From Pelomyxa schiedti (Eukaryota; Protista; Evosea), in NCBI GenBank assembly GCA_020536535.1, contig JAHLWZ010000952.1, forward strand, positions 1 to 38,943: a stretch of 38,943 bases of DNA. Reading direction: 5' to 3'. Shown piece by piece: positions 25,445-38,226 of this stretch (position 1 is its first letter; every line of letters begins with the position of its first letter). The position numbers and the translations under genes are program-made. The notes beneath the pieces are model-generated. The model saw nothing but the letters and a program-made list of their open reading frames with translations. It ran no database searches and was not told the DNA's origin.

Positions 25445-28400
25445 TTACTGTTTGTCTGCCAAATAGGCATCATCAGTGTCAATGGTAAGTGGTTCCAGAG
25501 GTGAACCATGCTGTGACTCAACGAGAAGCTGGTCTTGCTGGTCATTAATGAAAAGTGCTTCTGAGCTTGTGCTTGTTGTGGTTGTCAGTGGCTCCTCAGA
25601 GAGCGGTATTAGTAATGGCTGAGCATCAGGCTCAGCCTCAGGGTCAGGGTCGCCATGGCTGTTGTGGTTGTTGAGTTCTTCGTTTTTGACAGCGTGGTAA
25701 GTGCTATTCTTGGAAGAGAACAGAGACTCCCCCTCGAGTAGGAGAGGCAGCAGAGCGGGCGTTTTTCTTCTCACCCTGAGGCGGTCTCTCTCCAGCCCAA
25801 GGCCCCGCTGCTTCTCCCTCTCCAGGTCCCGCCTCACGGTCTCCAGCTCGGCCCGGGTGGTCTCCAGCATCCTCTTGGCCAGCTCGGCCTCGGCTCTGGC
25901 CGCGGCGATGTCCAGCTGGGCCGCGGCCACTTCGAACTTGGAGACTTCCGCGACGTGGGTGGCGATGGTGACTTGGTGGCTGGCTAGGGCCGTGTAGTGC
26001 TTGAGGTCGAATTCGTGGTTGTTGGGGGTCACGGATATGGGAACTTCGCCGGGTTGAAGTGACTGTTGGACTTGGTGTTGGTAGAGTGATAGTTGCTTTT
26101 GTGGGTCCGGTTGTATCTGAATGATCATCGTGGGTTTAATTTGGTTTCTGGCTTTTTTGGTGTTGGGTTTTTAGGGGATAGTGTTAGGTTGGAAACAAGA
26201 TGGTAGGGTAGGTATTACTTACTGGATAGTGGTACAAATAGTTTTGTTGTGTCTTCGTAAATCAGGGCATTGGCTACTTTGTTATCCACTTTCAATATCT
26301 CACATAATTTATACACAAGCTCATTGACTGACGATATTGCCAAGTCAAATTTTCTTTTTACATTTCCACAGGATACTACACCCACAACGTATATGAGTTG
26401 TAGAAGTGATTCCATAAACTTTTTCCCTCCCAGCACATGCTCCACCCTCTCTCTCCAACATTCAGGGAACATTGCCCCAGCACTGAGTAAGAATCTTGCT
26501 ATCTCAAGAGCTTCATCATCAGGTTTCTTGGTAATCATCTTGTTTCTTTGCCGCACACAGCAGTCTGAACAAAGGAAAAAAGAAGGGCAAAGCACACAGG
26601 CCATAAATGGAGTTCCACTGGCTGCTCCCCACAAGCCGCAGCCTGCACACCATAAAGGGGGTGTGCAGGCTCTCTTCATCACGGTATTTAATTGAGTATG
26701 TGAGGTAAACACTGTAAGACCGTGCTCCCGTATGCACAGGAACTAGTTGACAGTGAACCATACACAACAAAGCGGAATTTTTACCTTATTCCTTTCCAAA
26801 AGAGCTATAATGAGCGGCGTTTTCCCATTCTCACATTGCGACATCATGAGGGGAGCAGTATTCATATCAATACCACTTTCCACCAAGGCATTAACAACAG
26901 CAAGAGAGCTGCATCTACAAGCAATACGGAGTGCTGTTTGTGCACCAGGTGTCCTCATACCCTTTCCCCCACACACCAAAAGCTGAACAACAACGTCTGT
27001 TGTTCCCCTTGCACAGGCAACATGCAGAGGTAAAGTTCCATCCACTATATTTGGCACTGCTGCACCTCCACCGACACATACAAGTACGTCAACAACAGCG
27101 GCACACCCCCTAACTGCAGCAACATGTAGTGGGGTCATCCCGCATGCTCCTATGCCACAGCTAGCACCACTCACCCCACTCTCCACCAACAGTGAAACCA
27201 CTCCCACATGGTTATTACAACTTGCAATAGCCACGGGAGATATGCCATCCTTTCTTGTCTTGCTCACATCTAAGCTGGGGTTCCCTTTTTTGAGTAGGAG
27301 GTCCACAATCTCAGTATAGCCTTTTTGACTGGCAACAAAAAGAGGGGAGGCACCATCCCGGAGGTTCCCAAGATTGACATCGACACAGGTGGATAGGAGT
27401 ACATCAACACACGCACAGTGACGGTTTTGGCAAGCAACGTAAAGAGGGCTAGTACCATTCTCTTTGCTTTGTGTATTATCATCTGTCGTAACGATGGCAT
27501 TTGGGTTCGCACCAGCGTTGATGAGTGATACTGCAACACTGGTGTGGCCATTTTGACAGGCAAAAAAGAGGGGAGTTGCATTATTGAGCTGAAGTGTACA
27601 ATTCGGATTTGCACGCCCTTTGGATAGTAAAATATCAACAATGTGTATGTAACCGTACCAGCTCGCTATATGCAGTGGTGTTGCGCCTTTACGTTCAGAT
27701 GTTGTTGGTGTGTTAGAATCGACTGTATTGGGAGGGGCACTGTTCTCAAGAATTTCTGAACTTCCGTCAGTGTGTACTTGGGATTCCAAGAGATCAATAA
27801 GGAAATCTACAATATTTGTATGACCTCCCTCACTAGCAGCAAATAGTAGTGTTGGAGACCCAGGGATTTTTGGGTGGCGTGAGTGCAAGAAGTTTGGATT
27901 TGATCCTAGTATGTGGCTAAGAGTAGAATAATCTCCGTCTCCTGCAGCTTGGAAAAGTTTGTCCATAACGGAGCCATTGTCTGTATAGGAAACTGGTTTG
28001 ACTGTATCCTCACTAGAACTAGGAACCAAAATTGCTCCATCATTAAGGTCATCTTGCTGCCCACTATCAATGCACCCGGTGATGGGTTCACTGCCATCAT
28101 CATTTTGCACTGGTGGATTCCCAGCTTCACGGACTCGAAATTTCTTCCTGCGCTCATGAGAAGCGGGAGCAGGCAGGGGAAGTGCCAAACTTGTGGGGTG
28201 CTCACAAGCAGTTACAGAGGTGGTAGTAGTGGTAGTTGTCGTGGTAGTCGTAGCGGTGAATGGTTGAGCGTCAGGGGATTTTGCAGGTTCCGCAGCGGAA
28301 TCGGGGGATGTCAATTCTGGTGTCCTTGGTGGAGAGACAGTTTGAGGTTGTGATGGAGGTGTGGATGTTATGGAAGTTGTTGCCTTTGTTGGTGTTGGGA

Positions 28401-29018
28401 GGTGGATTTTATGTGGTGAAGGTGACCTTGAAGGCGACCTTGAAGCTGGGGGTGAAGGCAAAGGTGATGGAAGGGGAGATACATTCAACATATTGGAAGC
28501 CAGGGTGGACTTACTCATGGGAACATATTTCGAAAAAGTAGGCATGGAGGGGTTGAAATTGAAGTTGTGGAAGTGGGTGGCTGTCGCCCTGTACGGAGAG
28601 AAAGGCATTGAGCCAGTCAGGAATCTCTTTGAGAATGGTGTGATATCTGAAGGTGATGCCGTGGGTGTCACGTCATCCTCCTGCTCTTTGTCACTGGGCT
28701 CCTCACTATCTGGAGGTAACTGAACAAACTTAGCAGAAGCAGCACTGCCAACTAATCATAAAAAAAAAAAAAAAAACAACAATATCAAATTAACAAAGAA
28801 GAAACGGAATAAGAATGGCGAGGAGAAGAGAGGAGGGGAGGGAAAAAGAAGAAGAAAAGAAAAGAAAAAAGAAAGACAGGGGGGAGACACAACGTGCTTG
28901 CAAGGCAGATCTGAAGAGACGAGCAGGGGGAGTGAGGGCCCTGTGGGGGTGTGGCGGTGACGGCGATTCCCTCTCCCTGGCAGCCGAGGGGCTCGCCACG
29001 ACGCGGTCCCTCAGCCAT
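25445..29018 (-). CDS. Ankyrin-repeat protein with Ser/Pro/Thr-rich N-terminus, ZZ-like zinc finger, possible PB1/Ubl-like domain and C-terminal coiled coil
   Basis: ATG at 29018 sits in a GCCACCATGG context. About 10 ankyrin repeats (TPLHIA, TPLFFAC, SPLYVAC, SPLFVAS, TPLHVAA). CAGC..CVLCPSFFLCSDC finger. Heptad-like AAQLDIAAARAEAELAKRMLETTRAELE. Checked splice phases are compatible. Confidence 0.85.
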
Positions 29019-29311: not shown

Positions 29312-32300
29312 ATGGAAACTTCAATAGGGTGCTCAAACATGCAAAACAGCGCCCCTAGTGGCTTGCCTTGGACCAGCTTGTTCCTCCCTTCATCAAATAT
29401 CTGTGATCGGGGATCTCTTCGGAAAATGGAACGAAACGAAAAATTAAAATTTAACAACAACAAAGAGAGAACCTTTGCGTTAATGTTGCCTGTTATTAGG
29501 GCCAAGCCCGGTGCACCACGGGCGGCATTACCGAAAACAAAACGCCGTAGAACGGGATCTGCGACATCGTCCAGGGTGAAGTCTAAGCCCATTCCGAAGG
29601 AGATTGCGCTGCCCCAACGTAAAACCGCGTCGGCGACTCCGCTCAAACTGACCCAGATCTTTCCGTTGCCACTTACATCGATCGAGAGATCTCCTACCGT
29701 AAAAGACAAGCTCGTGTCTCTGCGTGACTCGGAAAACGTCGCGCCCGAAGCAGCGACTGCAGAGACTTCGTTGACAAGACTTGTCACTCCCGGCCAAGAG
29801 CTTGAAGCAACTGGCGCAATTCCAGTTGGGAACAAAGTGGCATCAGGCCCGCTTTCTGGCCAAGTTTTCTGTTTCACGCCAGATGCTTTGTTTCTGAGGG
29901 AACTGAGGAATGCCGTGCGCGCTCAGGGTGGGGCAGTATCGTATTCACTCAGTAAGAAAACCACTCATGTGGTGGCCACGGAAGAAGAAGTGAAGGGATT
30001 TGAACTTGCTGAGGTCACAGATGTAAATGAGAGTGATCATACACCCCACTGTTCACCAAGTCCTAGTGATGTAAATAAAGCTCTCAATGATAGGAGCCAG
30101 ACAACTAGAGGTAACCTATGCAGAGGAAGCATTTTGGCAAGGGCAAAACTGATGAAAAATGTCTCCATTGTCACACCTGACTTTTTCACTGGCTCCAAAA
30201 CTGAGAAGACAGGCCAGCTAGCACCTCAGTCTGACAAAGATCCTGTAATCCCACATTTGAACCACAGCTCTGTTTCCTTGAACAGTACCGATGAGCCAAA
30301 GACTGTCTCAACTCCATGTGAAGAAATTGATCCCATAGTTGGAAAAGAAGTCACTGAGATACCACTTGAGGACACACTATTAAACGAGATAGACAAAATT
30401 GAAAGAAATCAAGTTGAAGTGAAACCCAACCAGCAGGAACCTAAATCTGTACATGTTTTTCTCTATGAGTTGCAGTTTTCATGTTGAGTACTCAATTCTT
30501 TTAGTCTGGCTCAGGACCACCTAACTACCGCAAGCCTGCTTACAGTGGGCTCACCCGTGTTTATAACTTTGAGGACCCAGGCCAACCAAGTTTTCCAGAA
30601 GAATATACAATCCTTAATCGCAAAGTTTTGCACGTTGTCACAAACTTAAATAATAACACACTAAAATCACTTTACAGTGTACTGACCTCTCTAATAACGA
30701 AAATAAATACTACTGCCTAGAGCTCCACTATGGTGGTTACTCCAATTACAGGCAAAAAAAATCACAGTAGCTTATAAACCCTTACTTCTATTCAAAAGAG
30801 TGTTTACACACTGGGGAAAGACAGATGAAATAGATTGGAGACGTTCATCTTCCTGTGGGCAGAAGCAATGCAGATATGTTCACACTGAGGTGCAGGCACA
30901 GGTACTCACAAGTTTGTGTTTCAAGGTCTCACATATCGTCTCTAGACTCTGTTCCAAATAATTCTGGATGAAAAATTATCCGAATACAAGCAATATAAGG
31001 TCTCCTTCTGATTTTTCAGTTTTCTTATCTGTATCTACAGATTGTGGACCTAAATGTCTCTACTATTGGGTCAGATAAGGTTTTCTTTCACAGGTCTTAA
31101 TTATTCCTCAATCTGTTATCACAGGGCATTGAATCCGGAAATGCCAAGGCACCAACAGTACCAACAGAATCTCACACACCAAGTTCCAGTATCAACTTAA
31201 CACCAAGTGTGGCCCACCTTGTTTCTTTGTTATTCTCTGAAGCAACTCAAAGTTTAATATCTCAGGTAAATATTTCGAGAAATACCTCCACCTCTCACAT
31301 TTTTCTGCAGTTGAATGTACTTATAACTGCACGCGGAATAGAAACTCCTTTGGGAGTTCTCACTTCCAATCAAGTGGCAAAAGGAAGAAGCATCCTCGAT
31401 AAAATTCAGAGTATCCTCTTGATGGTAGTTAAAATATCACACATAGACCCTCATTATTTCGTAGGCAGGACCTCCTGGAGATATCAAAAAGCTCTCTGGT
31501 GAATTCTATTCCCTAATTCCCCACAAAATTGGCCAGAGGTTTTTTGTAAAGTTTTGTTTTTCCATACTCACTTGTTTTAGCAAGTCACAAATAAGCTCTG
31601 CTCTAATCAACAATCTTTCCTTACTTCATCAAAAACAAGAATTACTGCAATTGATGGATGATGTCCTTAGAGTAGGTTTCTGTTGGATATTGTAATATTT
31701 GCTTATATATTCATGGAAAGGTTCTTAGTACCGGTGAAGCATCTGAATCTGCTCTTCTGACAAGTAAATATCGAGCTGTGTGTATTAATGCACAAATTTG
31801 CTTTGTATTCACACCAACAGCTCCACTGTACAATTACAGAAGTTGAGGAAGGGACTCCCGAATATCAGCGCCTTTTGGAATGTATGTGTGCTCCAAGTAA
31901 AAAAAGTACTGTGTCAGCACTTGGCTTGCATGTACTACACATTTGGCAAATTAGTCGAGAAGAAGACAGAGACACATTTACTTCAACTATTTTCAACACT
32001 AAACTTCTATTCCATGGTTCCAAAGCAGGTTTGAGAAATAAGATGCTTATTGGGGCTTACACTTCTGAAAGGTAACTGGCTGGGAATTCTATCACGTGGG
32101 TTTCTGGATCCAAAAACAGTTTTATCCATGGGTGTGTCCAGAACTGATGAGGGTCTTTTGGTAACTTTTTTTACTCTATGCCGCTCTTTGAGGAAAAAAT
32201 AGGGTACTGGACTATATTTCACTCCTGATCCTCTCACAGCAATCAAGTACACAACTGGTAACAAGACCTGAAAGACATTATGCCAAGTTCCAATTTAGGA

Positions 32301-35300
32301 TCGAACCGCATTATTGCAGCAGCTACCGTCGCTCTTGGGAATATAAAAGATTACTACACTCATATGCCAACACTTGTTTCACCTCCTCAGAATTACCATT
32401 CTTGTCATGGCGTTAAATCTCAACCTGAGCTCCACTCAGAATTTTCTGATGATGAGTTGAGTTTCTCGATTGCATTGAAATATTCTCTAATGTGGACACT
32501 AGATATGTCATATATGACAAAACTCAACAAAAACTTGAATACCTTGTCGAATTTACCTTGGAGAACGATTCAACAATGGTTACTGAAGAAAGTATTATAG
32601 CTGACAAGCCGACTCAAAATCTTCAAACTCTGGAATCAGAAAAACCAGCTCTAAGACCTTCAAACCCCACCTCCCAATCCCCTTCACCACCGAAGTCACT
32701 CTCACAACCTCCGTTAGCCGAGCCAATTCTGAAGGCTCCAAGAACAGTAGCTAGAGTTCCTACAGTACAGGAACCAACCACTAGTGTCAGGAAGACGCTT
32801 CCCCATTCATCCCAAGCCCCACTTCATTCCAATTTTCTACCTGTAGCCACAAGCAATGCCCCTCAAGCAAGCTCCAAACCAAAGTCTCCACATCCAATTA
32901 CTGTAGAATTCCTGACCACTGCCCTTCCACGATATGCTTCCTGGGTTGCAACTTTACGGGTTGATTATAAATCAGAACTCATGACATGGGAGAAAGCAGG
33001 GAAATCGGGCCAATTTTTTTATGTTGGTGTGTTCTTTTGAAATTTTTTTATCTGTGTTAACAGGAAACAGATCTGAGTGACTGGAAGGTTTTCCTAATTA
33101 CTTTTTCTCCACTCTAACTTCAAAAGCAACGCTCCATAAGAGCTACAGGGTTTGCTGACGTTGCTCATAAGTTATTTCCATTTTTTGAGGAAGGAAAGGT
33201 GTACAGTATCTCCCACTGCATCATCCAACCTTCTCGTGAGACCTATGGAGTGATTCACAACCCTAACCAACTGCTTTTTACTGCTGAAACAAGCGTTGAT
33301 TTATCTACTGGTTTTTTTTGATAATCTCTAAACGCAATGCTTACTCTACTAAAGACCACAATCCATTCCCTCCTGTTTTGGCTCATTATCTCCCTCTAAC
33401 TACTGCTCTAAAGAGGGGTCATCAAGCTGTTGTTGGTACGCGTTCCTGCTGTCTTCAGCCACCTAACATTCTGCTCAGACGTCGTGGGTTGTGTATCAAG
33501 TATTGGCGAGTTGAACTCTATTACAGCAGCCAGCACAGGGAACGCCATTCCTACAGTAAGCTGTACCTTATCATTATTTCTCCTAATATTTTAGCGACAA
33601 GTTCAACTTCGAGACAAATCTGGATCGGCTGTTCTGCAGGTGTGGTACGCTACAGCCACAGAATGCCCCTTCTCTGTCAACTCCATTATTGCCTTGAGAG
33701 GCGTTTTGGTAAATGACTTCCAAGGTATAAACCCGTTTGACCCTTTTCTTCTTACCAGAACTAGACGTAAAGACACTGTCAACAAAACATGCTTCCTTCC
33801 ACCTCTACATTGATAAGACCGATATTCCGGAAGTCGCAGATCTTAAAAAATGGTACCAACCAGGGGAATAATCTCCATTTAATAAAGCTGAGGATGGAGA
33901 AACAAGTGAGTCAAGAATCTCTTGTATTAAAAGTGCCACCAAGCCAGAGGTAGTTACGTTTTTTCCCCTTATTTGCAAACTTGTTTTTTTAGCACTATTG
34001 AACAAGACATCCCGTCCTTGCAAATCCCTGAAGTGAATTCTGTTGTGCAACGATGGATGGTACCCTCTGGTAAACTTGAAGTTCCCTCCATTCAACCAGA
34101 CTCAATCTCCAAATCCCTCTGCGGTATCAACAGAAATGCCACTTCATTTCCCTCATAATACTAGGGGAACACCTATCGTGGGACTCTGTTCAAGTGTGCC
34201 AATGGCTCGAGGACACTCTAAATCTTCCCCAATATTCTCCTTTATTCAAACAACAACAAATTACTGGAGCTATCCTGGAAACCCTTTCTGACAGTGACTT
34301 ATTGAACTATTTGGGTGTGAGTTCTTTGGGTCACAGGAAAGTTATTATCTCTGCCGTAGAAACATTAAGGCAAAAAACAAGGTTCTATCACACAACGTGG
34401 TTACAATTTCCAATCCTCTTAGGGACACTAGAGCACATCTCATAGAGACAATTGTTAAGGATCATGAAACAATCACCGAGTTCGCTCGTGAGTTGAGATT
34501 ACGTGTCCAGAAAGATGCTGCAGTGGATTGGGCTGGCTTTTCGTCCTTTTTATCTAACATGTGCTCGCCAGCACTTGCACAAATTGTCTTATCTCACCTC
34601 AGTCCACCTATTCTCAAGAGGTAACTAAGCCTCTAAGACCAACAAAAAAAGTTCTCTTTCCTTCCTTCATTTCTCTCAGACTTCAAGAGTTCGGCCTAAG
34701 AAACAATCTTATAACCAATGCAGTTATAAACCTCTCTTTGAATAATAACGAAGCAGTTTTGAAAGATTCACTGGCCAGTCGTATCTTCCCATTCAGAAAA
34801 AATAGTTCTATATAGAAGTGTAAATAAGAACATGACTGTGTTTGAAGGACCTTTTTCAATTACTTCGTATAGAGTCAAAAGAAGTAGAGGTCCCAAACCG
34901 GCTTTTACTTAATCCGTTTTCTCATCTTGATGACTTGTGTGCACGTAAGCTCGATTCCAGTGAAGAACTTGGACTTGAGCTGATATCAGCATCCCAGTTA
35001 CCACAAGACACCCTTGATGTGAGCATTCTGATTTAGCTGCAATTCACATTGAAACATTCAAAGCACTGTTTCAGATGGAAGATAGGACATTCCCCTATTG
35101 TCAGCCTTAAAGTATTTAAAGCTAACTTCAGCCTTTTCACACGCAACTTATTGAGGGACATTGATTGGAGGTATACACTCACTGCCATACGATTTTCTCC
35201 TTGACGCAGTAACAGGAATATTGCTCTCTGCGGGGGTTCTGTATTAGCCTCTCTTCTCCTAGCTCCGAAAACAATTCCCTTGGAAGATTGGTACTTTGGG

Positions 35301-37389
35301 GAACATAGTCTCTGGAAGAACTCCGATATTGACCTTTTTTTGATCGGATTAACTTCTGAATTGGCTTTGGAAAAAGTTCCTCCTCTGCTCACTAAACTGA
35401 AAGATGTAACATTTAACAGATAAAAAGTTTATATGCTAGCCTTAAAAAGGCTTCAGGTGTTGAACCTTGTATCATCCTGACAAAGAATGCTCTTACACTT
35501 GCCTTTGGATGGCCTTATCGCCACATTCAAATCATTCTGCACCTTTACAAGTAAGCTCTTAGACTTAAATGCACTTCTGAAAGAGATAGATCCATAGAAG
35601 ACGTTCTTTGTTCATTTGATTTAGACTGTGTTTGTTTTGCATTTGATGGATTGCAGGTTGATATCTTGGAACTCTTTAAAATTCATGCATCTGTTTTCAG
35701 GTTACCTGTATGCCCAGGGCGCTTCGTGCCCTTAATACACGTACCAACTTTGTTGATGTAAACTTATTTAAACATTTTCACTATGGACGCCATATTCGGT
35801 ACTTCTGCTCTAAATAGTCAAAAAAATAATGAGCACGTATCACTTCAGTGCTGTTAAATACTGGAAGAGAGGCTTTAACCTCAGACTACTTGCTCCAACT
35901 TTTTCCCTTTTATGCCCAGCACCTGAATTGGTAATATAGTTCGCCTCGGACAAAAAAAGCGCTTACTGCACATAGTATATTGACATTCCTGTTCTTGCTG
36001 GTGCCCTGTCAATCCAATATAAAGCGCAACGCGTCACCGAGTACGATTCAGCTTATATCCCAGTTGGGCCTTCCTATTCTGCAACTGCAATTTCGGAGCA
36101 CCTCAAGCGAAAATCTGACAAGATGGTAAAGCCAGCTGCTGTTCGTTTTATTGCCTTAGCCTCTTCAAGGTAACTGGTTTACTAAAATCTGGAAAATTGG
36201 CAAGTGCAAAGCTGTTCAGGCCTTTTTTTGTTGTGGGAGCACTCGACGAACTATTACAACATAACCTCTTTCAAAGCTCTGATTTAGGCACCAGTGGCAA
36301 GACAATACAGAGTCCCCCTCAGACATCCACAATACTCTCAGTCAGTTGCTCAATACCTCAAGGTGTCACCATACCGCCTGTTCTGCTACCAAGCACTAAG
36401 CCGTCCAGCTCACACAGTATTGTAGCAAAGATTCCAGCCTCACCCAATACAACTGTGCTGATGCTCAAATCGTTCTTAAAAGAACCTTCTTGGAGAGAGC
36501 TTTTGGGTGAACAGTTTATTCTACCATATTTTACCCAAATAGGTGGGTATCCAATGTAACAATAAGGGGGAACATAACCCTACACCAGAAGCGAAGATTT
36601 GGGACTTTCTTGCCGAGGGCAAAAGGATTTACCCCCCTCTGCCATCCGTATTCCGAGCATTTAATTGTACTCCTTTCTCCCAAGTCAAGGTTTTACCCTA
36701 AGTGTCCTAATACTCTATTCATACTCTGTATAGGTTATTCTCCTCGGCCAAGGTTTTCCAATTTATTTTTTCAAAATCTCACTAAAACCGAGTTTGCCCA
36801 CAGATCCCTACCACGGAGAAGGCCAGGCTGATGGATTGAGTTTCAGCGTACCCCCCAGCATCACTACTCCCCCTAGTCTTAAAAACATATTTCTGGAATT
36901 AAGAAGTGATATACCGGGCTTCAAGATGCCCACATGTGGTTGTCTTGACAGCTGGGCCAAACAGGTCCCTGAACTGATTCTCCAAAACCTCTGTTTTTTG
37001 AATATTAATTACCCCAACAGGGCGTACTCCTTCTCAACACCACATTGACAGTTGAAGCGGGAAAACCAAATTCACATAAGGACATTGGCTGGGCCAAATT
37101 CACAACCGCTGCGCTTCAAATGTTAGCCAAGGGAGGGAAACCTCTTGTCTTCATACTTCTTGGCAAGTTTGCTCAGGAATACTGCTCGGAGGTTTTTCCC
37201 TCAAAACTCTCACAGAAAGCACTCACAAACATCTCTCACCAGGTGACACTTGGTGCTAACACTCTCGTTTTGAAAGCGGCACACCCATCGCCCTTCTCTG
37301 CTCAAAAGTTCTTTGGCTGCCGCGTATTCAGCAAAGCCAACGCCTTCCTCCTCAGTCACCACCAATCCCCAATCAACTGGAATCTCTAA
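29312..37389 (+). CDS. Giant multidomain protein: BRCT - WGR - PARP regulatory - PARP catalytic (PARP4/vPARP-like) - OB - OB - SAM - nucleotidyltransferase-like - uracil-DNA glycosylase
   Basis: [33 protein letters not shown]; [20 protein letters not shown]; FYSLIPH; catalytic LLFHGS, GTGLYF, KYT, DDEYVIYD; RPA70-like [18 protein letters not shown] and [29 protein letters not shown]; [25 protein letters not shown]; NTase GGSVL..SDIDLFL..FDLDC; UNG GQDPYH, LLLN, HPSPFS. About 40 short introns give a continuous reading frame. Confidence 0.8.
36470..37389 (+). CDS. UNG: Uracil-DNA glycosylase family 1 domain (C-terminal part of the PARP fusion gene)
   Basis: [88 protein letters not shown]. Confidence 0.92.
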
Positions 37390-37488: not shown

Positions 37489-38226
37489 ATGACAGCCTAC
37501 TCAGCAGACGAGTTTCCTTGGTGCCACGAGACCGTGTCGGCAACGCCAGCGGCTCAGCTCCTCCAGCACATCAAAGACCAGGTTTTGCCCCTCAGCCCGC
37601 GGGGCCGCGGCATCCTGCGCCTCGTGTGCCGTCGCCCCTCGGCGCAGACCACGGCCCGGGAGGTACTCGTGGGCTCCTCCTCCTCCTCCTCCGGGCCTGC
37701 GGGGTGGCTGGTGGAGGTGGGCAGGGGCCTGCAGGGAGACAGCTACATGCAGAGGGGGTCGAGGAAGACCGCGGACGGGTCCCCGCACCCCGACGCCCAG
37801 ATAGCCGCGATTAACTCGCGGGTGGCTGAGTTCCTCGTGAGGAACTCGCTGGGCGGCGGGGTGTATGATTCGATGGGGGAGGGGGACAGGCACAGGGCGT
37901 GGGGGGCACTGGGTGACCAGCTGTATCTCGACTTGGACATAACTGGGGCTGGGATCAGCCCAGGCACGCGGGTTCTCGTTGGAACTGACGCCGTTCTTGA
38001 GGTGACTACTAAGCCCCACACTGGGTGCCCAAAATTTGAGCAGAGGCTTGGAAGGTACAGTGGATTCTATTCTTGCCCCAGCCCTAACAAATAAAACAAA
38101 ACAAGCCACACTCTTGAACTGGTCAAAACAGAAGAAGGATTGAATTTAAGGCTAAGGGGCATATACTTCAGGGTGATTACCCCAGGAATCATCAAAAACG
38201 GAGACCCAGTTGTTATAATCGAGTGA
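37489..38226 (+). CDS. MOSC-domain protein of bacterial type (one intron)
   Basis: GLQGD, DGSPHPDAQ, GDQLYLDLD, GTRVLVG, VLEVTTKPHTGCPKF (conserved MOSC Cys). An intron at ~38055-38106 leads to LRLRGIYFRVITPGIIKNGD, with stop at 38226. Confidence 0.85.

Follow-up and report, generated by a model that had tools for sequence, protein, structure and literature searches.

Can a single amoebal gene encode an ADP-ribosyltransferase (ART), a nucleotidyltransferase (NTase) and a uracil-DNA glycosylase in one chain, and what would such a chain do? The question is raised by a locus on the + strand of contig JAHLWZ010000952.1 (C952) of Pelomyxa schiedti, which is 38,943 nucleotides long, contains no N and was analysed as a whole (the window); the assembly searched with it holds 52,367,397 bases in 5,337 contigs, in keeping with the published 52.4 Mb and 5,337 scaffolds (PMC8887013). 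We confirm the domain order BRCT-WGR-HD-PARP4-type ART-RPA70-like OB-A/OB-B-SAM-Gad2 NTase-family-1 UNG, so that the PARP4-like ART, OB folds, SAM, NTase and UNG listed by an earlier note on this DNA all stand, joined by the BRCT and WGR/HD modules before the ART that it had overlooked. All domains of a BRCT-WGR-HD-ART protein with Gad2 are thus present, and with good confidence they belong to one chain, a point that hinges on the single intron 33853-33892. External searches were run exon by exon, whereas the joined protein was compared only locally with fetched sequences, among them a Vermamoeba transcript protein (P0090), a Mastigella eilhardi Trinity protein (P0001) and a Logan contig from another eukaryote (L046, found through a second database match). 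The features of the gene are as follows.

29312-29842, + strand: low-complexity N-terminus, read from the sequence
29843-30190, + strand: BRCT domain with an internal insertion, residues 178-293 (Pfam PF00533, E 5.6e-7)
30505-31079, + strand: pre-WGR strand and WGR domain, exons 2-6, including GC-AG intron 30752-30798 (collinear with Vermamoeba P0090)
31125-31777, + strand: helical regulatory domain, PARP_reg or HD (weak PF02877 match in exon 8, E 9e-3; P0090 alignment)
31821-32566, + strand: PARP4-type (Clade 5) ART (PARP exon match, E 5e-4; PDB; tree)
32567-32893, + strand: Pro/Ser/Thr-rich linker sharing its exon with the ART end and the OB-A start, read from the sequence
32894-33310, + strand: RPA70 DBD-A-like OB fold, OB-A (PDB match to RPA70 DBD-A, E 4e-5)
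33355-33852, + strand: RPA70 DBD-B-like OB fold, OB-B (PF16900, REPA_OB_2, E 8e-6)
33853-33892, + strand: critical intron of 40 nt, acceptor GAG, enclosing the hexamer AATAAA and, in frame, TAA 33869-33871, with ATG 33894 directly after it
33893-34123, + strand: linker, exons 23-24 (OB end to SAM 68 residues, versus 70 in L046)
34165-34381, + strand: SAM domain (PF07647, E 1.8e-17)
34423-34777, + strand: helical segment ending in an F-box-like motif (common to L046/P0002, its second half also to P0001)
34873-36270, + strand: Gad2-family (PF26128) NTase, tail motif in exon 36 (profile and motifs)
36271-36455, + strand: Pro/Ser-rich linker, encoded by one exon together with the NTase tail and the first UNG helix (homology-corrected model)
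36456-37389, + strand: family-1 uracil-DNA glycosylase (UDG exon match, E 1e-6; motifs)

The first gene path was built by reading the three frames by hand, and the stop-free path claimed earlier, from ATG 29312 to TAA 37387-37389, is borne out; the accompanying estimate of about 40 short introns and 2,000 residues holds broadly, the homology-corrected model having 39 introns and 2,093 residues. Thirty-eight of these introns measure 39-59 nt and one, at 34778-34872, measures 95 nt; the latter was placed by homology as the single intron within 34680-34872, and a two-intron parse of 34723-34847 was dropped on the same grounds. Donors are GT in all introns except one GC, consistent with the 98.41% GT-AG and 1.59% GC-AG introns described for P. 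schiedti (PMC8887013). For that GC-AG intron three alternatives were discarded, the GC-AG parse scoring best against five homologs. Acceptors are TAG (16), CAG (16), AAG (6) and GAG (1). In the window and the fetched loci, roughly one in four of the 3' splice sites predicted for Pelomyxa is AAG, a share that looks high for a eukaryote. The gene is single-copy in the genome, and an assembly chimera was rejected given the lack of N, the uniform intron style and the joins seen in homologs. Among four candidate start codons (29312, 29339, 29426 and 29483) the true start may be ATG 29483, giving 2,036 residues; it is favoured because, as at the next gene, this is where the CpG peak starts and a TTA-ATG context is found. 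A basic run resembling a nuclear localization signal (NLS) lies within the N-terminus at residues 75-80 of the longer model (29534-29551).

The earlier proposal that the modules form one polypeptide is largely supported, with the GAG intron as its weak point: of the four joins between modules, three have independent homologs and the remaining one is inside an exon. The exonic join is that from PARP to OB: as claimed, it needs no splicing, since the open reading frame (ORF) 32492-33040 spans the last PARP strand and the start of OB-A (the PDB match of this short piece is weak, E 0.18), and although it sits inside exon 16, no homolog of it was found outside the window. At the upstream modules, residues 384-864 align collinearly with the Vermamoeba protein, which confirms the WGR, HD and ART exons. 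For the passage from OB-B through SAM to the NTase, a single unbroken ORF of L046 runs from the OB-B tail across a linker into SAM, followed by the F-box-like helix, with Gad2 past one more intron; the L046 OB tail matches that of the window (p<5e-5), one intron position is common to both, and its Gad2 is sister to the window and Mastigella domains in a quick tree (Shimodaira-Hasegawa-like approximate likelihood ratio test, SH-aLRT, 99), all of which supports L046 as a probable ortholog in which this join recurs. The NTase-UNG join also stood up: P0001, the only strong match in a homolog search among 1.84 billion representatives, joins Gad2 to UNG through a proline linker within one ORF, collinear with residues 1415-2093 at 49% identity. 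This protein begins mid-helix and is numbered.p3, and its transcript therefore holds further ORFs.

The weakest join of the one-gene model is the GAG intron 33853-33892. Among the acceptors after donor 33853 its GAG scores best against L046 and keeps a conserved Trp, the others being rejected for stops, loss of that Trp or a lower score; an alternative intron, 33778-33817, would keep one gene and was rejected for removing a conserved OB strand. A self-trained gene finder, fitted to roughly 100 kb of retrieved Pelomyxa sequence, is an imperfect tool that missed six hand-curated introns and exon 1; in its predictions GAG accounts for about 1.4-5% of Pelomyxa acceptors, and one GAG intron, in the PARP4-VIT gene L019 of this genome, is convincing. 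Refitted without the PARP-UNG gene, the finder still predicts a single gene through intron 33853-33892. Two separate genes, for instance after a recent fission, would consist of a BRCT-WGR-PARP-OB-OB protein ending at TAA 33871 and a SAM-Gad2-UNG protein beginning at ATG 33894 or 34057. Such an arrangement gains from the acceptor being the only GAG among 64 hand-curated introns, from the AATAAA being the only one in the 39 introns of the gene, from the unspliced W-Y end, which resembles the end of RPA70 OB-B, and from the context of ATG 33894, with A at -3 and G at +4. It would require, however, a gap of 22 nt between genes, compared with 100 nt past the stop of this gene and 206-640 nt between most neighbours predicted in tandem (a set with one 2-nt value, probably a mis-split gene), and the spacer is exactly as long as an intron, is bounded by GT/AG and has the phase needed to restore the Trp, at a point where the L046 ortholog is uninterrupted. 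The gene-start CpG peak is absent at the join, which is weak evidence, the counts around the candidate ATGs being 8 and 6, compared with a median of 13 for the 22 starts that were predicted. Against the single gene, the forced split at ATG 33894 costs only 1.9 nats, making this the weakest join in the gene finder, which does not penalise the short gap. The linker homology to L046 across the join is not significant by itself (p 0.2). A split with a realistic gap, at ATG 34057, costs 9.6 nats, and the other stop-containing introns of the gene 3-19 nats. Taken together, we consider two genes rather unlikely and a full-length single product probable on this genomic evidence, perhaps accompanied by a short BRCT-PARP-OB isoform that stops at TAA 33871.

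Several features assign the ART of this single gene to the PARP4 type. Its H-Y-E triad is intact (H736, Y775, E841), PARP4 is the sole, weak PDB match of exons 13 and 15 (E 0.02-0.07), and in a quick, midpoint-rooted tree it clusters with Clade 5, among whose members are four PARP4-VIT paralogs from P. schiedti itself, apart from PARP1-like paralogs (SH-aLRT 100). As in Clade 5, the ART is placed mid-protein with a BRCT upstream, and this BRCT matches that of PARP-Gad2 homologs, which also carry WGR (PF05406). T782 occupies the position of PARP1 K903 and PARP4 T484, an ungapped alignment being assumed, and D839 that of PARP4 D545. These PARP4 residues have been tied to a dead acceptor site and mono-ADP-ribosylation (Frigon and Pascal, PMC10711553), and because T782 and D839 match them the window ART is predicted to mono-ADP-ribosylate. 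The marks of PARP1/2-type enzymes, a functional K903-equivalent acceptor site and zinc fingers, are absent from the protein, the Pfam search of exon 1 giving no zinc-finger match. The break-signalling role suggested earlier is therefore only partly supported: the WGR retains its W-G-K motif, but the ART is PARP4-type and predicted mono-ADP-ribosylating, and vault RNA, although bound by human PARP4, does not stimulate that enzyme (PMC10711553). No VIT or vWA follows the ART, a linker and OB folds standing there instead, whereas VIT does come after the ART in the P. schiedti paralogs L017, L019, L021 and L031.

The OB pair corresponds to DBD-A and DBD-B of RPA70, with aromatics at the stacking positions. 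F238 and F269 of RPA70 are conserved as F1030 and Y1061 in OB-A, residues whose equivalents we take to stack on single-stranded DNA (ssDNA), and W1152 and F1177 sit at the stacking positions of OB-B, presumably as counterparts of RPA70 W361 and F386. The remaining RPA70 parts, DBD-F and the zinc-binding DBD-C trimerisation core, have no counterpart in the window protein, where OB-B is followed by SAM and no further OB match was seen. At the other end, the glycosylase has the water-activating loop, Phe/Asn pocket and His loop of family 1, with all catalytic motifs intact (D1918, Y1920, F1931, N1977, H2059) and Phe at the Leu-wedge position. That it might be the sole UNG of the genome was rejected, three other family-1 UNG loci being present, as was its one-residue-shorter His loop as a special feature, which is common to other Pelomyxa UNGs. 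Two of the paralogs (L004 and L009, on C914 and C852) have altered loops, with Ile for His after the catalytic DPY and Gln at the wedge, and putative activity; a bacterial-type UDG-like gene with introns (L002, G000:C291:35790-36407) was probably acquired laterally.

Between these DNA-binding and DNA-processing modules lies the NTase. Its membership of Gad2 follows from the Pfam label on the ortholog P0001, a near-maximal Atlas score and 218 bits for our own profile on the window model, and its motifs comprise G1532-G1533, D1563-x-D1565, Q1616, F1632-D-x-D1635 and K1681-Y-x-x-R-G. Gad2 is named from a phage anti-Gabija protein predicted to be an NTase, the anti-Gabija activity having been shown for phage members only (10.1101/2023.05.01.538930); a 2026 review adds no further Gad2 mechanism. 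Sequence searches with the Gad2 profile against the PDB and scans of viral contigs gave no match. By contrast with the PDB sequence search, an AlphaFold model of the Mastigella ortholog domain (predicted local distance difference test 81.5) superposes on the heads of class II CCA-adding enzymes and poly(A) polymerases (Z 9.0-10.2, root-mean-square deviation 3.8-4.5 over 176-181 residues), and also matches many giant-virus proteins. GG and the DxD of motif A are kept, while Gln and FDxD replace the third carboxylate and RRD; RRD, EDxxR and the third carboxylate of CCA-adding and poly(A) polymerase enzymes were not found in the window domain. The same replacement has been described for a Pandoravirus relative, for which tRNA maturation was proposed (10.1101/2023.12.02.569716). 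Judged from the model, the Gad2 domain is class II NTase-like and not a CCA-adding enzyme. Four further Gad2-family loci occur in P. schiedti (L038, L039, L041 and L045, on C1041, C602, C1136 and C177).

The combination of PARP and Gad2 is itself widespread in Amoebozoa. Of 97 long Gad2 proteins, fifteen contain PARP as well, in most cases together with BRCT, WGR, PARP_reg and ankyrins; those with a named source belong to Dictyostelium, Tieghemostelium, Synstelium, Physarum, Vermamoeba and Flabellula, and D. discoideum Q54HY5 of Clade 5B is one of them. Q54HY5 shares with the window protein the BRCT-WGR-HD-central ART order without VIT/vWA, the Gad2 that follows, its place in the Clade 5 group of the tree and about 36% identity over residues 396-860; the window protein differs from Clade 5B PARPs in carrying OB-OB-SAM between ART and Gad2 and UNG in place of ankyrin repeats. 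A second P. schiedti gene, PARP4-like with Gad2 and ankyrins (L036/L043, G000:C865:30452-34086), is stop-free over 832 residues with 25 canonical introns and is the probable ortholog of Q54HY5. With human PARP4, the vault PARP of Clade 5A, the window protein has in common the BRCT-WGR-HD-ART order, H-Y-E, the D-loop and the acceptor-site signature (equivalents of T484 and D545), but it lacks VIT, vWA and the region binding major vault protein (MVP), has Leu rather than Asn at position 471 and keeps W-G-K in its WGR. Compared with Gad2 proteins of phages, giant viruses and other eukaryotes it has the family motifs and, as modelled for the Mastigella ortholog, the class II NTase head fold, and it is set apart by embedding them in a nuclear-encoded, intron-rich multidomain protein. 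In mammals RPA and UNG2 are partners. As in that partnership, a family-1 UNG is coupled to RPA-type ssDNA binding, here covalently, through DBD-A/B-like folds only and with two transferases attached.

The novelty claimed earlier must accordingly be divided. Neither a protein in our architecture comparison nor a paper in a word-limited search of the open-access literature showed the full architecture, and the literature search also returned no report of a covalent UNG-RPA-PARP combination and no paper on the PARP-Gad2 core; that core, however, is already in databases across Amoebozoa. The C terminus of Clade 5B PARPs, described only as "long C terminal extensions" with no NTase named (Citarelli 2010, PMC2964712), can now be named as a Gad2 NTase, which makes Q54HY5, by its domains, a PARP-nucleotidyltransferase double enzyme open to study in a genetic model and bears on the question of PARP4-type enzyme function.

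What might the fused protein do? We give even chances to its being a nuclear, ssDNA-directed lesion sensor with two writer enzymes, built by one gene on a Clade 5B PARP scaffold. Such a protein would have arisen when a BRCT-WGR-HD-ART-Gad2-ankyrin scaffold gained an RPA70 DBD-A/B pair and SAM and exchanged its ankyrins for UNG. The OB pair would grip ssDNA, SAM could oligomerise the protein along it, and the tethered UNG would remove uracil to leave abasic sites, placing the RPA-UNG2 partnership in cis; the ART, gated by BRCT-WGR-HD, would then mono-ADP-ribosylate itself or neighbouring proteins as a mark, and Gad2 might add a nucleoside monophosphate to the 3'-OH of nucleic-acid ends near the lesion, the least certain step. 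A DNA-directed role is suggested because Gad2 also fuses with PNKP and WGR-PARP-HMG modules and because the stacking aromatics and the UNG catalytic residues are intact. The idea of DNA ends in particular comes from the recurrence of partners, namely WGR-PARP, an HMG box and a PNKP phosphatase and kinase. P0085 (L061:99-3167, a JGI contig; 1,022 residues) has Gad2 flanked by a PNKP-type phosphatase and an AAA_33 kinase domain, and P0097 (L060:6001-10899, a Logan contig), without C-terminal ankyrins like the window protein, is an intronless WGR-PARP_reg-PARP-Gad2-HMG box gene near one for a DnaB-like helicase and possibly viral or mobile. Only tentatively do we propose that uracil excision on ssDNA held by the RPA-like pair switches on mono-ADP-ribosylation and Gad2 nucleotidyl transfer to DNA ends; if so, the Gad2 family would have DNA ends as its class of substrate, and this would hold for the phage anti-Gabija enzyme as well as for the homologs in giant viruses and fungi. 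Gad2 spans phages, giant viruses, fungi and amoebae with no substrate given in the open-access literature examined, and its fusions (here OB and UNG; elsewhere PNKP, HMG and WGR-PARP) make an action at nucleic-acid ends directly testable.

Several observations speak against the sensor. None of the PARP-Gad2 homologs contains OB, SAM or UNG, and no one homolog covers all modules, L046 lacking UNG and starting within OB-B and P0001 starting after SAM. Gad2 is mostly partnered by protein-binding modules (ankyrin, BTB, F-box, TPR), and the solved folds nearest to the Gad2 model are RNA enzymes. The three other UNG loci, together with other RPA-like loci and a dUTPase in the genome, would make the fusion a specialist, dispensable for routine repair.

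A rival reading is domain accretion with only loose coupling, in which Gad2, within one chain, would behave like its relatives paired with ankyrin, BTB and F-box and act on protein or on an RNA 3' end (tRNA or vault RNA), UNG and the OB folds merely localising the protein or acting independently. The Z scores of 9-10 to CCA-adding and poly(A) polymerase heads, the tRNA role proposed for the Pandoravirus relative and the lack of UNG in L046 would all suit it, as would the binding of vault RNA by the BRCT of human PARP4 (PMC10711553). The RRD and EDxxR of those RNA enzymes are nevertheless missing, and DNA-handling partners (PNKP, HMG, WGR, OB, UNG) recur around Gad2, and we regard accretion as unlikely. 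Defence against foreign DNA is a further reading, the OB folds and UNG detecting or damaging viral or symbiont ssDNA or uracil-DNA, with ART and Gad2 as immune writers and SAM forming a polymer. It draws on the discovery of Gad2 as a phage anti-Gabija protein (10.1101/2023.05.01.538930), the many Gad2-like proteins of giant viruses, the expansion of Clade 5 PARPs and MVP repeats in P. schiedti and the fast domain shuffling around Gad2, which would be typical of conflict systems. The antiviral uracil sensor of the earlier note gained no positive support, and a search for an AID/APOBEC or SNAD deaminase that could supply uracil turned up none that was convincing, although these are weak negatives. 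We also know of no uracil-DNA virus of amoebae, the gene is single-copy with its Gad2-UNG half conserved with Mastigella at 49%, and an NLS-like signal is present. A defence role thus appears unlikely, and the ssDNA-directed lesion sensor is the reading we prefer.

Elsewhere in the genome, at least four PARP4-VIT genes (L017, L019, L021 and L031) and MVP repeats on six contigs point to an expanded vault system. PARP-like domains also lie in intronless frames of 1,800-2,560 residues (L022, L023, L028 and L029, on C800, C797, C346 and C1157), which in so intron-rich a genome are possibly mobile or viral elements. Within the window, the next gene (37489-38226, + strand) begins 100 nt past the UNG stop and is MOSC-like by eye, its first exon having no Pfam match, and upstream a divergent ankyrin-repeat gene (25445-29000, - strand) has its upstream region in common with the gene described here.

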